DNA of 64,000 bases from Lytechinus pictus (Eukaryota): the NCBI RefSeq assembly GCF_037042905.1, contig NC_087259.1, forward strand, positions 22,754,001 to 22,818,000, in the 5' to 3' direction. The notes below the pieces were generated by a model. The model was not told the origin of the DNA and made no database searches. It saw only the letters and a list, made by a program, of their open reading frames with translations. Made by a program: the position numbers and the translations under genes. Shown here piece by piece: positions 29,431 through 36,575 of this stretch; positions within the stretch are counted from its first letter, which is position 1; each line of letters opens with the position of its first letter.

Positions 29431-30492
29431 AAATTTCATGCAGAAAATACATATATCACCACTTCTCCTTGTAGAGTAATAATAACAATCAAATTAGGCC
29501 GACTACATTTTGGGACCGTTTTCAGGTCAAGCATAGGCTATTTATTGTACATCACTATAGGAGTCGATAAACTGTTTAACCACGATTATATAAACACTGA
29601 ATGATAATCTATGTGATTATGTGCTATAATAAAACACACATCAACAATCATGGATAGCAATTTTATCACTTTTGAATGATTAAGCGTTTTGGAGAGAAAT
29701 CAAAAAATGGGTTACTGGGAATTTGCTCAAAGTGATGATTTATGCAAATTGATATGTTACATGTATGGAAGAAATACACAAAATCAATCATATCTCATGA
29801 TGCAGAATTGAACACAACGCCCTTTTCTGTACATATCTCCCTTTTATGATAGAGCATTAATACTAGACATAAGGGGCCAAGAAAATGATGAATGGCCTAT
29901 ACTTACAATGGACATTTCATGTAGGACTCACATGCACTATCATCTCATCTCACATCTCATCGAGGATAAATCATAAAAACCCACTTTTTACGTGTATTTA
30001 TTTATTTATTATTTATTTTATTTATTTATCCATTTATTTATTATTTTCTATTATTTATGTACTCATTTCTCTCCCCTCTTGCGTTAATTCACTCTTATTC
30101 CATTCTTTGTCAACTCGATATTATGTAAGACTGTCACTGCATATAGGAGCCTTCAACCAACAAGCCTTTTTTTTACTTTTTTGGCTCTTTCATTTCCACA
30201 TCTCTCATTTTATTTTCTCAGTCATTACTACAAAATATAATTTTCATTCCTTTCTGAATTCATGTAATCAGTATTTTTTTTTTTTGTATAGGCCTATTTT
30301 TTTTTACATTTATTTTGTCCTGCGTCTGAAAAAACATGAGGGCGACGGGCGAGTTCGCCCTCATGACTACCCAAATCGCCCCTAAAGTTCCCCCAAAAAC
30401 TATGCTTTGGGGCGACCATGCTTTCTAGAGTCGCCCCAAGATGATCTGTCCCAAACAAAGTTCAAGACTATTTAGAAAATCCCTATTCAACC

Positions 30493-30634
30493 TAAATAAG
30501 AACCTTGTCTATTTGTTGCTCTGGGCTATGAAGCTTCAGGTGCTATGGCAGCTAACAATGAACACGGTCCCTGTGCACATAAAAGAACAAACGCTTACAC
30601 CAATGATGCAGTGTGCATAATACATAATCCTCTA
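30493..30634 (-). repeat. 3' LTR (TA...TA termini)
   Basis: Direct repeat of 35599-35740. Confidence 0.93.
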
Positions 30635-30886
30635 TCTCCCCCCAAGTCTTTGGCGTGTATTGTAGAGAAGATGGCAATACGGGAACGAAGACTGAAGAAG
30701 TCAAATTAACAAAGATGGTGCATCGTCGAAACGAGTCCATAAAGCTCCATGTATAAAATCAAGAACCGTGGGAATAACATAATTAACTAACACTAAGGAA
30801 CGCGAAAACAACGTGCAAAGTCAACACCAGTGCAAATAACAGGAAACTCTTGAATGCAACACTAATGTCAGTTGAACTGGCTGAAA

Positions 30887-32680
30887 TCACATGGAATAGT
30901 CCGAGTGCCAGACAGGCTGTCTGGTGCGACGGGTAGAGCACCGTGGTGCTGTAGGAGGGGTGCCAGGCGGAGGAGCAGTGATCGGTGCAGGAACTGGATC
31001 CAAGCCGGGGGCTGCTGGTGGTGTCTCAGGCGGCGTTGTGAGGGAGTCCTCCACGGTAGAGGGGGGATGCGTTCCACGAGGGGCATCCTTGGCTGCCTGC
31101 GGAGGTGAAGAAGCGGCAGAAGCAGGCTCAGGGGGGCGGCATGGGGCATCTGCAGTGCCGGTATGTCGCAGGGAGAGTGGCACCTGTCCCACACGGCTAG
31201 AGAGGGGTGCGGGTGCTGGACGGTGATGTAGAGAGATGTCTTCCTCCATAGTCAGTGGGGGTGGGTGCCGTCGCACAGGCACATATTTCCGAAGAAATTT
31301 CCTGTTGCGGAGGGTGACCCTCCCAGAACCATCAACTCGGATGACGTATTGGTCATACTGTCGAACTTCGATCACAGTCCCAGTTCTGTCCCACTTGAGT
31401 GGGTGTGGTCCTGTCTGATTCTGGAGGCGGACGTGGTCTCCGACGGCAAGGGGCAGGAGCCGTTTAGTATGCTCGGACCAACGTTCTGCGTCCCTCATGT
31501 GACGGGTACGAAGTGCTTCTTCCCGAGCTGCCAGGGTCTCGCGCCATGTGTTGTGTGGTAGATATTTGCCTGGGGCAATGGGGATGAAGTCTTGGATTGG
31601 ATGGCCAAAGACACACATAGCCGGGGAGAGCCTGGTGTCCCTGTCAGGAGTGTTCCGGTACTGCAGCATAGCCCGTTGGAAGGTATCAGTGTCTAGGGCA
31701 CCTGCAGGGCTGGTGTTGGACATGATGAGACGTTTCACGGATTTGACAGCCACCTCAGCACGACAGTTGCTATGTGGGTAAGCAACGGATGAAAGTCTGT
31801 GATGAATGCCCCAGTCCTTGAGAAAGCGGCGTGTGGCAGCTCCTGTAAATTCTGGGCCACCATCCGATGCTAGTTCATCCGGGATCCCGAAGGTGACGAA
31901 TGTCCTCCGTAGGCAAGAAATGAGTCCAGTTGCCCCTTGATTGGACCTCTCAACGATGGGCCAATTGGAGTAGCGGTCCACGATGACCAGGTAGTTGCAG
32001 CCCTTGTAGTGAAAGAAATCGGCACAGATGCATTGGAAAGGGAAAGCCGGAGACAGCAACGGGGTCGGGGGTGCACGCGGGTTGGAGGGTGCGATCCTGT
32101 TGCATTGGTTGCACCGGGCACGGAGAGCTGTAATGGCTGGAGTGATGCCAGGCCAAAAGACTGAGGACTCGGCTCTGGCTGTCATAGAAGTTACTCCTTG
32201 GTGCGCAGCATGCAGATGAGCCAATACTTCCTCCCGGAGTGATGGTAGTATGACAATGCGGTCTTTGTAGAGGATGACACCATCACTTGTATAAAGGTCG
32301 TCACGGAATGGGAAATATTCGCGGACAGGTGAGGGGAGCTCATGACGAAACTCCGGCATGCCAGCTTCAACAGCATTGAGTAGTGCTTGCATGTTGTCGT
32401 CACTAGTTGTGGCAGTACGGACCCGGTCCCATGTGACTGACTTCAAGTGGAGGGACTCCAGGGCACACATAGCAGAGGAAAGCGTGCAAATCCCGACAGT
32501 GTCCTCTTGTGGGGCCATGGTTCGGAGGCCTGCCATGAGTGATTCGGAGTGCAGGAACATGGCAGGGGTCAAAGAGATTGCAGCGATGTCATCAGGGAGG
32601 TGCAACTTCTCTGGCTCACCAGGACGGTGTCTGACGCCTGGAATGTGGACCATACGGAACTTGTATCGCAGGGTTTTTTT
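30887..32680 (-). pseudogene. Gypsy integrase region
   Basis: HAAH..CNQC zinc finger, CADFF / SDGG / RAEVAV (DDE), Pro-rich tail; frameshifted from RNase H at the T run near 32675-32681. Confidence 0.9.
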
Positions 32681-33697
32681 TCCTTCAAATTCCTCAGGCG
32701 GGGATTTGGGATGTCTTGTAGGGCGCAATCGGCAAAGATCTTGAGGAGGGGCTTGTGATCGACAGCTATGGTGAGGTCCTCACATCCCAAGACGAAGTAT
32801 CTCGCCTTGTCCAGGGCATCAGCTACGGCTAGGGCTTCGCCTTCCTCTGGAGCATAGCGTGCCTCAGCGGCATGGGTGAATCTGCTCCCAACAAGGGTGA
32901 TCTTCCAGCCCGTATTGCAGCAGAAGGGTTCAGTGTTGTTGCAGCTGCAGTGTTTTTGTAGGAGCCAGAATCCGATGCCATTCTTGGACCAGTCTGTCGC
33001 GAGGCAGGTGGGTTTGTGTGGATCAAAAATGCGCACGCCTTCCTCAATCTCGCTGGCAATGGTGGCTTTGGACTCGTCGAAAGCTGTCTGGAGTGCTGTG
33101 GTCCATATGAAGGGTGTGTTGGGCTTCAAGAGGTCACGGAATGGGAGCATCTTCTCAGCCATACTGAAGGCGTAGGACACTTGATTGACAAGGCCAAACC
33201 AGGAGCGCACATCTGTGATGCCGGTGGGCGTCGGGAATTCAAGGATGGCTTTTAAGTACTTCTCACACGGGCGAACACTGTCAGGGGTGATCTCAAAGCC
33301 AGCAAATTCGACGATATCCGCACCGAAGGTGAACTTCCTAGGATTGAGGGTAATCCCGTTGCGGTCGCAGATATCCAGCCATTCAACAGCCTGGAAGAAA
33401 CTGTCTCCCACCGTGTCAGCCCACAGTGTCTTATTTTGGATGCCCGAGACGATGTAGCCCTGAGGGGCTGTCTTGTAACGGTACCTGCCCCATGGGGTAA
33501 TGAAAGTGGTGAGGTGTCGGTCCTCTGGGCATATGGGGACGCTGTGGTAACCATTCCATGCATCTAATACCGTCTTCTTCTTCCCATGAGGGACAGAGCG
33601 GGCCTGAATGAAGGGTGATGGTGTATGGTGCGTTTCACGTGTAGCATGGATGTTGAGGGCCTGAAAGTCGACTGTTCGACGCGGTTTACCATCCTTC
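32680..33697 (-). pseudogene. Gypsy RT/RNase H region lacking the catalytic YxDD motif
   Basis: KKDGKPRRTVDF, LDAWNGYH, TFITPWGRY, then PQGYIVSGIQNKTLWAD with no DD; RNase H ATDWS, EALA, VDHKPL. Confidence 0.88.
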
Positions 33698-33698
33698 T

Positions 33699-35576
33699 TT
33701 ATAAAGACTTAGCACACACCACCATCCTGTGGCACCATGTAACAGGCTCCCCAATGGGTACAGGTTCCAGCACGCCCAACTGCACATCATGATCCAAATT
33801 AGCCTTGACGGCATCATGCCAATGGAGTGGGACCGGCACAGGTGTGTGATGAGCGACAGGTTCCGTATCTGGGTCTACCATCAATTTCATCGGGGGGCTA
33901 TCCATGAGTGGCAAGAGCTGATGCTCACAGGTATTGAATGTGCTGGACTGGTAGTAATCTAGGAGATACTGTTGGAGCTTCTCACGGTTTGCGTCAGTCG
34001 CAGGGAATGGCAGTTTTGTAGGAGGCAGTGGGGGCAGTTGACGTCGAGGGCAGGGACAGGCGGCCCGCTTGGGAACCTCCTTGAGGGTGGCTGCTCTGTC
34101 TGATTGGTGTGCCCCTTGTGTCATGCCAAGAGTAGGGAAGCTTTTTGAGATGATCCCCAAGGCAATGCAGGCCTCTTTGCTTAGGAAGAGCTTATCAGAA
34201 CTGTCTGTGACATAAGTGAGTTGCCGTGACTCAACCATGTGACCAAGAGGATCTTGGCCAGAGAGGCGTAGGGGAACGGCTCCGAGGATCGTAATACCGC
34301 CCTCAGTTGCGGTGTGCATCGCCATGGTGACAGGAATGATGTCTTGCTGACGTAACCCAAGGCGGCGTAGGACCTTTAACCCGGCGAGGCAGCTCTGACA
34401 CCCAGTGTCCGCCATAGCTGGGATGGCGCTGGTTTGTGAGGGGGATGACAGGTTAAACCCGAGGGCTCGATAGTCCTCCGGAACAGCCCTTACAGTCACA
34501 TTGAGGTATGGCTGAGGAGTTGATTTCTTCCTGTGCCATGCTCGGGAAATGTCATCATATACGTGGTGATCAATGGGGAGGCCATGTGATTGTCCTAGGT
34601 CACGGATAGCACAAAAGGTATCGAAGATGGCCCCCTCCTGCTCACCCGAGGAGGTCGACTGTGACGTTTTCGGCTTGCCCTTGGTGCGGCAGACGTCCTC
34701 CACGTGGTGGAACTTGTCGCAGTGACCACATTTCTGTCCATAGGCCAGGCACTGCATCTTGCGGACACGAGCTGGGGCACTCCGTCCGTGTCCTTTCTTG
34801 CCACAGTAGGCACACAGTTCCTGTTTGTCCTTGGGTCCTGGGTATGCCTGCTTAGCTTTCCTATAGGAGGAGCTACTGGCCGTTTCCGTGTGTGAGTCGA
34901 GGAGAGAGGAGGCAGAGCGTTTACCAGCCTCTTTCGCTTCAATGAACTGGAAAACCTCTTCCAGGCCCATGTCTTGGTTTTTGTCCCCTAAAAGATCGAG
35001 CTGGATTTCAGAATCGGCAATCCCCCTGGTAAGCACATCCCGCATGATCGCGTCAGTGTAATTGACGTCAGCATTACAGGCAGGGCAAGCTATGATGAAT
35101 TTGCAAATATCCGCTTGTCCCCGCAGACGGGCGCCGAAGCTGCGAACTGTCTCGTCCCTGTCTTGACGCATGTTGTGGAGTGTCACGCGGGCAACCATGG
35201 TGTTCTCCTCTCGTACGGCAAGCTTCTTGATGGCTGTCAGCACCTCATCCTCAGTTTTGTTGGTGAGGCTGCCACCAGCAGCTCGCGTGAGGTCCTTCCG
35301 TAGGGGCTCGTCACAACATTCCAGAAGCTGGACAACTTTGTCTTTCCCAGTGATCCTAGTGGCATCGACGTAGTCGGACCACCGCGACTTGAAGTACGCC
35401 CATTCCTCGCTGGTGCCAGCAGCAGCAATAGTTGGTCTTTTGACCTTCTCGACCTTGGCGGCTTGTCCAGAGGTGTGAATGGTACTGTGGGCAGTTAGAA
35501 GGGCAGCTACGATGGCAGCATCAAGGTCTGGTGTGGCGTAGTCACAGCCGGGAATTGGGCAGTTAACGGTAGGCAT
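33699..35576 (-). CDS. Gypsy gag-protease (premature stop at the start of RT)
   Basis: Two zinc knuckles (CAYCGKKGH..C; CGHCDKFHH..C), aspartic protease ADTG; an ~11-bp insertion after VVCAK creates TAA and a frameshift. Confidence 0.9.
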   Translation of the reverse strand: MPTVNCPIPGCDYATPDLDAAIVAALLTAHSTIHTSGQAAKVEKVKRPTIAAAGTSEEWAYFKSRWSDYVDATRITGKDKVVQLLECCDEPLRKDLTRAAGGSLTNKTEDEVLTAIKKLAVREENTMVARVTLHNMRQDRDETVRSFGARLRGQADICKFIIACPACNADVNYTDAIMRDVLTRGIADSEIQLDLLGDKNQDMGLEEVFQFIEAKEAGKRSASSLLDSHTETASSSSYRKAKQAYPGPKDKQELCAYCGKKGHGRSAPARVRKMQCLAYGQKCGHCDKFHHVEDVCRTKGKPKTSQSTSSGEQEGAIFDTFCAIRDLGQSHGLPIDHHVYDDISRAWHRKKSTPQPYLNVTVRAVPEDYRALGFNLSSPSQTSAIPAMADTGCQSCLAGLKVLRRLGLRQQDIIPVTMAMHTATEGGITILGAVPLRLSGQDPLGHMVESRQLTYVTDSSDKLFLSKEACIALGIISKSFPTLGMTQGAHQSDRAATLKEVPKRAACPCPRRQLPPLPPTKLPFPATDANREKLQQYLLDYYQSSTFNTCEHQLLPLMDSPPMKLMVDPDTEPVAHHTPVPVPLHWHDAVKANLDHDVQLGVLEPVPIGEPVTWCHRMVVCAKSL

Positions 35577-35587
35577 GTTTGAGAGTT

Positions 35588-35598
35588 GACCGTGTTCA
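35588..35598 (-). promoter_or_regulatory. Primer-binding site complementary to the element's own LTR (putative self-priming)
   Basis: Minus-strand TGAACACGGTC directly after the 5' LTR is the exact complement of GACCGTGTTCA inside the LTR (35665-35675); no TGG tRNA-type PBS. Confidence 0.75.
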
Positions 35599-35740
35599 TA
35601 AATAAGAACCTTGTCTATTTGTTGCTCTGGGCTATGAAGCTTCAGGTGCTATGGCAGCTAACAATGAACACGGTCCCTGTGCACATAAAAGAACAAACGT
35701 TTACACCAATGATGCAGTGTGCATAATACATAATCCTCTA
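35599..35740 (-). repeat. 5' LTR (TA...TA termini)
   Basis: Direct repeat of 30493-30634; ends 22 bp before the gag ATG. Confidence 0.93.
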
Positions 35741-36575
35741 CAACATGTGGAAGAAAATGATATTGAAATTCGATGTTTATTTATTTATTTTAGTTATAAA
35801 AACTGCTCGACGTATGAAGGGGCCCTGTATCAACAAACATGAAAACACATAACAAAACAATATGCAATAGTCAACAAAATAAACATATGATATAATGGTC
35901 AATGATAAAGAAAAAAAAATACACCAAAAAGGAGGAAAATGCAAATAACCAAGAAACTAATAAATTTTAGTGGTGTATATGCCTAATCGCTTAAAATGAT
36001 TTACACTCACAATTTACATACATGTATTCTCGCGCGCTATAGTCGCGTTTGCAGTGTATTTTAGGGGTCCACCCGCTATAGTCATATAAGGACCACTAGT
36101 CATATACCGGCTAATACCATAGTCATAATAATCATAATGGTCACGTTCATAAGGTCTATATGTTCATAGAGGTCGCTAAAGTCATAATCAACTATGGGGA
36201 CGCTCCCCCTACCAAAAATAGTAGGGGGGACACAATATCAAAATCCCCTTACTATTTTTGGTCTTTAATGATAGAGAAAAATACATCATGCACAATCGAA
36301 ATAATACATGTATTTTGGACCAAACGAACTTACATTTAGCATGTTTAGGGTGAATAAAAACCCTTTTTTTTTTGTAATTTTTTTTTTTTTTTTTTTTTGG
36401 GGGGGGGGTCAAAATGACCTTACGTTTTGGGTGATAACTTTTTTTTTTTTTTTTTTGCTTGTCTAATTTTCCAGCTCCTGGTCCCCCTAACTTTGGGGAC
36501 AGATTTAATAATAATAAATTACATTTCTATAGCGCATAATACACAAGGTCTCTATGCGCTTCACATATACAAGAA

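Follow-up and report, generated by a model that had tools for sequence, protein, structure and literature searches.

The Ty3/Gypsy-type LTR retrotransposon that occupies the minus strand from 35740 to 30493 of the window (the whole 64,000-nucleotide stretch of Lytechinus pictus DNA analyzed here) carries, directly after its 5′ LTR, a primer-binding site (PBS) complementary to a segment of the LTR itself. We consider it very likely that this family, and the whole clade to which it belongs, uses the 5′ end of its own transcript to prime minus-strand DNA synthesis. Three independent lines of evidence support this claim: covariation of the two pairing segments across the clade, the layout of promoter elements around the LTR segment (the arm), and genomic copies in which the PBS is extended by CC or CCC. 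What is observed directly is that the two segments are complementary, that their pairing is anchored at the LTR end and covaries in the clade, and that the CC(C) extensions follow the LTR sequence.

Features of the element are listed in Table 1. LTR boundaries were set by comparison of the 5′ and 3′ LTRs, which differ by one mismatch. The downstream copy of the target-site duplication (TSD), at 30488-30492, reads GGTTG and matches the upstream copy at four of five positions. Three frames separated by two frameshifts are present, and comparison of the second frame with sister copy L019 revealed two in-frame deletions, of 13 and 7 residues, with loss of the catalytic CVDD. The window copy is young but dead, with two frameshifts and without the catalytic motif of reverse transcriptase (RT).

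Table 1. Features of the element in the window
Feature	Positions	Strand	Description
5′ LTR	35599..35740	-	142 nt, termini TA...TA (TAGAGG...TTATTTA); direct repeat with 30493-30634
3′ LTR	30493..30634	-	Partner of 35599-35740
Primer-binding site TGAACACGGTC	35588..35598	-	Adjoins 5′ LTR; without TGG
Predicted self-primer, start of R, GGGACCGTGTTCA	35665..35677	-	11-mer 35675-35665 is exact complement of 35598-35588; kept in family; position covaries in relatives
First open frame	33702..35576	-	Gag with zinc knuckles, protease (ADTG), start of RT; ends by frameshift within RT
Second frame	32572..33708	-	Remaining RT and RNase H
Third frame	30890..32779	-	Integrase (H2C2 zinc domain, rve core), Pro-rich tail, no chromodomain
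Polypurine tract AAAGACTTGGGGGGAGA	30635..30651	-	Adjoins 3′ LTR; same tract in sister copies and other species
Target-site duplication, upstream copy TGTTG	35741..35745	-	

At the end of the 5′ LTR the minus strand reads ...TTATTTA, followed by the PBS TGAACACGGTC, the 11-nt leader AACTCTCAAAC and the gag ATG. The PBS (35598-35588) is the exact complement of GACCGTGTTCA at 35675-35665, nucleotides 66-76 of the 142-nt LTR. The T at 35664 is able to pair with the last LTR base, and when this A is included a 12-bp duplex, GACCGTGTTCAT / ATGAACACGGTC, is obtained. The preliminary description had reported both the 11-nt complement and its extension to 12 bp, and both are exact. Its statements that no TGG-starting PBS is present and that only 22 nt separate the LTR from gag are likewise read directly in the sequence: no TGG-type tRNA site follows the 5′ LTR, the PBS opens with TGAA, and the gag ATG lies at 35576, 22 nt past the LTR end at 35599. 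The duplex closes the minimum-free-energy fold.

A lone 11-mer match in one element is weak evidence when many windows are scanned, and it could represent a chance inverted repeat or an assembly artefact. When the 126 nt upstream were shuffled 20,000 times, the LTR-anchored complement never reached 12 nt (maximum 11), and the analytic chance expectation for an anchored complement of at least 11 nt is about 3e-5. A whole-genome DNA search revealed at least 16 5′ ends and many LTRs of the window family at 94-100% identity. In four copies the 1611-aa frame is uninterrupted, and perfect 5-bp TSDs flank sister copies. Arm and PBS motif are kept together in 15/15 canonical 5′ ends of the family. Since the pair occurs in 15 independent canonical copies and, with compensated changes, in several assemblies and phyla, chance or artefact is refuted by the comparative data, and we assign it practically no probability.

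The preliminary description had called for a test of compensatory covariation between PBS and LTR motif in relatives, and 27 distinct duplexes, each perfect over at least 11 nt and each anchored at the LTR end, were found. An integrase search identified a sister family (family B) in the same genome with ~80% integrase identity to the window family. Its LTR is ~106 nt long, with the arm AGCTGTGAACAT at nucleotide 44 and the PBS ATGTTCACAGCT spanning the LTR end; 5 of the 11 duplex positions differ from those of the window family, and all five differences are compensated. In a protein search, RT-RNase H of the clade was 65-86% identical in Diadema antillarum (the nearest named hit), Mizuhopecten, Mytilus edulis, Nucella and the anemone Actinostola, as well as in many contigs of ~5.2 kb. 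Full elements from Diadema, Mytilus and three ENA assemblies have TA..TA LTRs of 106-192 nt and the same polypurine tract, and each has its own perfect duplex of 11-14 nt starting from the last LTR base. TSDs of 5 bp were seen where both flanks were clear (Diadema, L055 and L056, not Mytilus or L054). A metagenome scan yielded 80 relatives with 39-72% amino-acid identity. An anchored duplex of at least 11 nt, typically 13-17 nt, was present in 19 of the 22 metagenome elements with a genuine LTR pair, while in the remaining three the site contained a mismatch, a changed base or Ns. Logan/TARA contigs, which are circularly permuted DNA assemblies and contain no transcript ends, added two further lineages in which the pairing is kept.

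The 27 tabulated duplexes are 11-17 nt long, and every one of their first 11 pairs is of the Watson-Crick kind. The first two pairs are invariant (T:A and A:T). Three to four Watson-Crick types occur at each of positions 3-11, with C:G predominating at position 3. The duplex closes the minimum-free-energy fold in 27/27 lineages, and in 20,000 shuffles per lineage an anchored complement was rarely or never as long as the one observed. A single compensated pair distinguishes the near relatives L064 (AGTTATACTTATCAT/ATGATAAGTATAACT) and L081 (AGTTGTACTTATCAT/ATGATAAGTACAACT). A third element, L129, has one variant's arm (A) together with the other variant's PBS (C) and thereby a single A.C mismatch, as expected if arm and PBS may descend from separate templates. 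In distant Gypsy families of the same genome, the LTRs are of the TG..CA type, the sites are TGG sites, and complementarity is not anchored and does not exceed 7 nt. A small hairpin recurs just upstream of the LTR end, its stem differing in sequence among lineages: GGG/CCC in L056, L066, L075, L076 and L125, and GCGC/GCGC in L084, L096, L103 and L134.

The variability of the site also bears on the possibility that priming depends on a fragment of a host tRNA or on some other small RNA, as in half-tRNA priming, and that the LTR merely resembles this RNA. The window arm ends with GTGTTCA, loosely like a tRNA T-loop; lineage L082 has a 9-mer in common with a tRNA (an ARAGORN search that returned only 3 tRNAs); and the 11-mer is contained in a 2.9-kb tandem array on contig 2. 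Against this, 27 different sequences are found in close relatives, though tRNAs are conserved across animals; a conserved internal fragment of a tRNA cannot account for such diversity, and a mature tRNA 3′ end is excluded because all 27 PBSs open with TGA, TGT, TGC, TA or TC and none (0/27) with TGG. The 11-mer occurs in the genome at background frequency (169 matches compared with 149 for the control), and among the matches listed none lies in the tRNA arrays found, these arrays coming from an Rfam tRNA search in which only 63 of about 73,000 candidates were scored. An Rfam scan gave no relevant family match in the region. We regard a tRNA or small-RNA primer as highly improbable. The contig 2 array itself (G000, 20425313-20478304) consists of ~22 units with a period of ~2.9 kb and has GACCGTGTTCA in each unit on the minus strand. 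On G000 contig 4 (9700711-9735957), over 40 tRNA genes are densely packed into 35 kb.

A second kind of evidence for priming by the element's own RNA is provided by aberrant copies of the window family. The LTR of the family reads CACAGGGACCGTGTTCAT, and the canonical PBS pairs only with GACCGTGTTCA and is followed by AAC. Genome-wide, the LTR end joined to TGAACACGGTC was found at 21 loci, 15 of which continue with the canonical AAC. All six non-canonical loci continue instead with CC or CCC, which is complementary to the GG(G) that immediately precedes the arm; the extension thus matches the LTR and not the element's own AA after the PBS. After CC(C), filler unrelated to the element follows. 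With random junctions, six of six would have a probability of about (1/16)^6. One further match, the 22nd, lacks an LTR arm in its vicinity and is compatible with a chance occurrence. Perfect 5-bp TSDs flank three of the six loci, L017/L028 (ATTGG), L019/L025 (GATGA) and L021 (AAATG), and the change must therefore have arisen in cDNA before integration. Non-canonical junctions of family B are not diagnostic: because its primer and PBS are identical, they are uninformative on the primer.

Such an extension is what would be expected of plus-strand strong-stop DNA that copies the RNA primer GGGACCGUGUUCA to its 5′ end, and the genomic fossils of the window family appear to record the 3′ end of that DNA. 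The two 3′-terminal C's would mismatch the genomic AA, and the second strand transfer would be derailed. Read in this way, the extensions would map the primer 5′ end to 35677-35675 (LTR nt 64-66). Part of CC(C) could also be non-templated C added from a capped 5′ end, in which case the start would be 35675 and not 35677.

Individual loci show further arrangements. L017 holds both versions, a CCC copy being followed by 181 nt of filler, 7 nt of U5 and then the canonical PBS and gag; part of the filler is a repeat with more than 360 copies, and for this locus alone a LINE/SINE-type insertion with an 18-bp TSD could be an alternative. L021 (G000 contig 11, about 5819200-5819950) is a chimeric insertion with the perfect TSD AAATG, in which a full LTR is followed by a 13-nt primer copy, ~510 nt of unrelated sequence and then just the final 31 nt of an LTR. 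At L015/L024 (G000 contig 3, 68984401-68990053) the same 8 nt precede both LTRs and the 3′ LTR lacks a polypurine tract, which suggests local duplication or recombination.

Pairings between U5 and the leader that are not primers exist in retroviruses and Ty1. The duplex could accordingly be a conserved RNA structure serving packaging, dimerization, cyclization or translational control of gag, with another, unrecognized primer being used; in favor of this reading, the support for self-priming is comparative throughout. A purely structural role, however, leaves the extension of the PBS by LTR bases in six copies unexplained. The last LTR base is the exact starting point of the duplex in all lineages, and it is there that minus-strand synthesis has to begin if the LTR end is to be defined; no alternative PBS is found within the 22 nt before the gag ATG. 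We consider the structural explanation improbable, and self-priming the preferred one.

If the arm is the self-primer, it should open R, and the sequences around it are arranged as expected in that case. In many lineages the arm opens at the A of TC|AGTT or follows CAG. The initiator (Inr) consensus is TCAKTY, with transcription starting at the A (PMC3601003), and TC|AGTT at the arm start matches it. A/T-rich TATA-like boxes (CATATTTAG, CATATAAC, GTATATAAT) are located ~25-35 nt upstream of the arm, and several lineages have ATTAAA/AATAAA poly(A) signals between the arm and the end of the LTR. In the window family, a clean TCAGTT initiator or TATA box is absent at the predicted start. On 35300-35900, no more than 7, 23 and 1 reads matched from three rRNA-depleted RNA-seq runs of the species; at these thin counts, from libraries of uncertain strand convention, no pile of read ends was seen. 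In one run the depth was flat at ~2 from gag to the LTR start, across U3/R. Another run was dominated by a diverged LTR copy with a foreign upstream flank; nine reads of run X9 cover such a copy, the indicated source being a solo LTR within a host transcript from another part of the genome.

The following sequence of events can be proposed. Transcription would begin inside the LTR at ~35677-35675, and the first 11-13 nt of the RNA (GGGACCGUGUUCA) would fold back over a 64-nt R-U5 loop and pair with the site directly after the LTR. The element RNase H would then cut past the paired CA, or past the next U, and RT would extend the short RNA primer into U5 and R. Later, plus-strand strong-stop DNA would copy the primer, so that the PBS of the progeny could be rewritten from the LTR arm. 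Such rewriting would explain why the two arms stay complementary as they drift.

The domain order RVT_1, RT_RNaseH(_2), Integrase_H2C2, rve is that of Ty3/Gypsy elements (Metaviridae). Pfam recognized RNase H, the integrase H2C2 domain and the rve core in the window frames; the RVT_1 score of P0002 and relatives is weak. Among proteins of solved structure, the best matches were to the Ty3 Gag-Pol polyprotein (7q5b, E 1e-42) and Ty3 RT (4ol8, E 4e-29); Atlas and PDB searches thus support a Gypsy-type Pol and no finer naming of the clade. The element had been described as chromodomain-less, and this held in the Pfam searches, which gave no Chromo hit in the window frames or in the full-length relatives P0002 and P0010. 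At the RT active site, CVDD takes the place of the usual YxDD and is invariant in 10 diverse members (alignment A1). LTRs of the clade are about 91-340 nt long and have TA...TA termini (TAGAG/TAGAC...TTTA or TCTA) and 5-bp TSDs. Troyka elements have CG...CG termini and a 3-bp TSD (PMC12440569), and assignment to Troyka was rejected on account of the TA...TA termini and 5-bp TSDs. Elements of the Mag lineage (Mag, SURL, Steamer-like) resemble the clade in their compact gag-pol of ~5-6 kb, short LTRs and marine invertebrate hosts (PMC6238403). The Mag-type families sampled in the same genome differ from it in having TG...CA LTRs and TGG sites, and their integrase identity to the element is 33-35%. 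The element, called Mag-like in the preliminary description, may be so, may belong to an unnamed MolGy clade (PMC6238403), or may be related to Tf1/sushi and lack the chromodomain.

Tf1 pairs through its first 11 bases, and its RNA is cut by RNase H between bases 11 and 12 (PMC7175516, PMC4600332); Tj1 and the sushi elements of vertebrates have been inferred to prime likewise (PMC4600332). Like Tf1 and Tf2 of S. pombe, Tj1 of S. japonicus and the Tf1/sushi chromoviruses of fungi and vertebrates, the clade has no tRNA-type PBS, and, as in the Tf1/sushi group, the bases after the 5′ LTR complement a short segment, which in that group is the start of R. The duplex, 11-17 nt here, is of similar length to that of Tf1. 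According to Lin & Levin 1998, as cited in PMC7175516, Tf1 needs a U5-IR-like stem; in many lineages of the clade, too, a small hairpin in U5 immediately precedes the PBS and may be analogous to the U5-IR stem-loop. Unlike the Tf1/sushi group, the clade lacks a chromodomain, its LTRs are very short and TA...TA rather than TG...CA, its RT active site is CVDD and its hosts are marine invertebrates. The preliminary description had proposed tRNA-independent, Tf1-like self-priming with RNA starting near 35675. The proposal is strongly supported by sequence comparison, and priming is here, unlike in Tf1, a prediction; the predicted primer 5′ end lies within 2 nt of the position guessed earlier.

Self-priming appears to recur, since it has been predicted from LTR-PBS complementarity in lineages outside yeast, namely the Tcn1 clade (Cryptococcus, mosses) and the plant Ty1/copia TAR lineage (Houba, Osr-1) (PMC6317226, PMC7175516). 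The clade differs from these in superfamily or clade and in hosts, and while the Tcn1 and TAR predictions are based on complementarity, covariation across the clade and LTR-templated PBS extension are available here in addition. A PBS without TGG is also found in half-tRNA users, i.e., copia, Ty5 and plant Osser/Bianca (PMC6317226, PMC5006619), and Skipper combines unconventional priming with the lack of a complementary LTR segment (PMC5006619). With both the clade shares a non-canonical PBS without TGG. Half-tRNA sites, however, are conserved because the tRNA is conserved, whereas the site here varies freely and always matches its own LTR; unlike in Skipper, an LTR segment complementary to the PBS is present.

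In the literature searched, no report of self-priming in a chromodomain-less animal (invertebrate) clade was found. Priming of the Tf1 type is already known; for the clade described here, the comparative support is unusually rich. Self-priming has so far been described mainly in fungal, vertebrate and plant elements; here it is predicted for elements of marine invertebrates, whose clade amounts to dozens of natural "compensatory mutants" and would tie the identity of the primer directly to an initiator element. Such elements will be missed or mis-scored by LTR annotation tools in which TG..CA ends and a tRNA-type PBS are required.

Tentatively, and giving it somewhat under an even chance as a whole, we propose a joint reading in four parts. 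Self-priming would have originated independently in a non-chromoviral Ty3/Gypsy clade of marine invertebrates. The Inr, the primer (11-17 nt at the start of the capped RNA) and the PBS would evolve as one unit, because the PBS would be rewritten from the primer in each replication cycle. Where primer and site have a short mismatch, as in the window family, a visible class of aberrant insertions containing filler would result. Finally, freedom from tRNA may help explain the near-identical polyproteins in echinoderms, molluscs and cnidarians. The RT-RNase H identity of 65-86% among elements of echinoderms, bivalves, a gastropod and a sea anemone suggests either horizontal transfer across phyla or extreme constraint, and independence from host tRNA, as predicted for this clade, is relevant to how such elements cross phyla.
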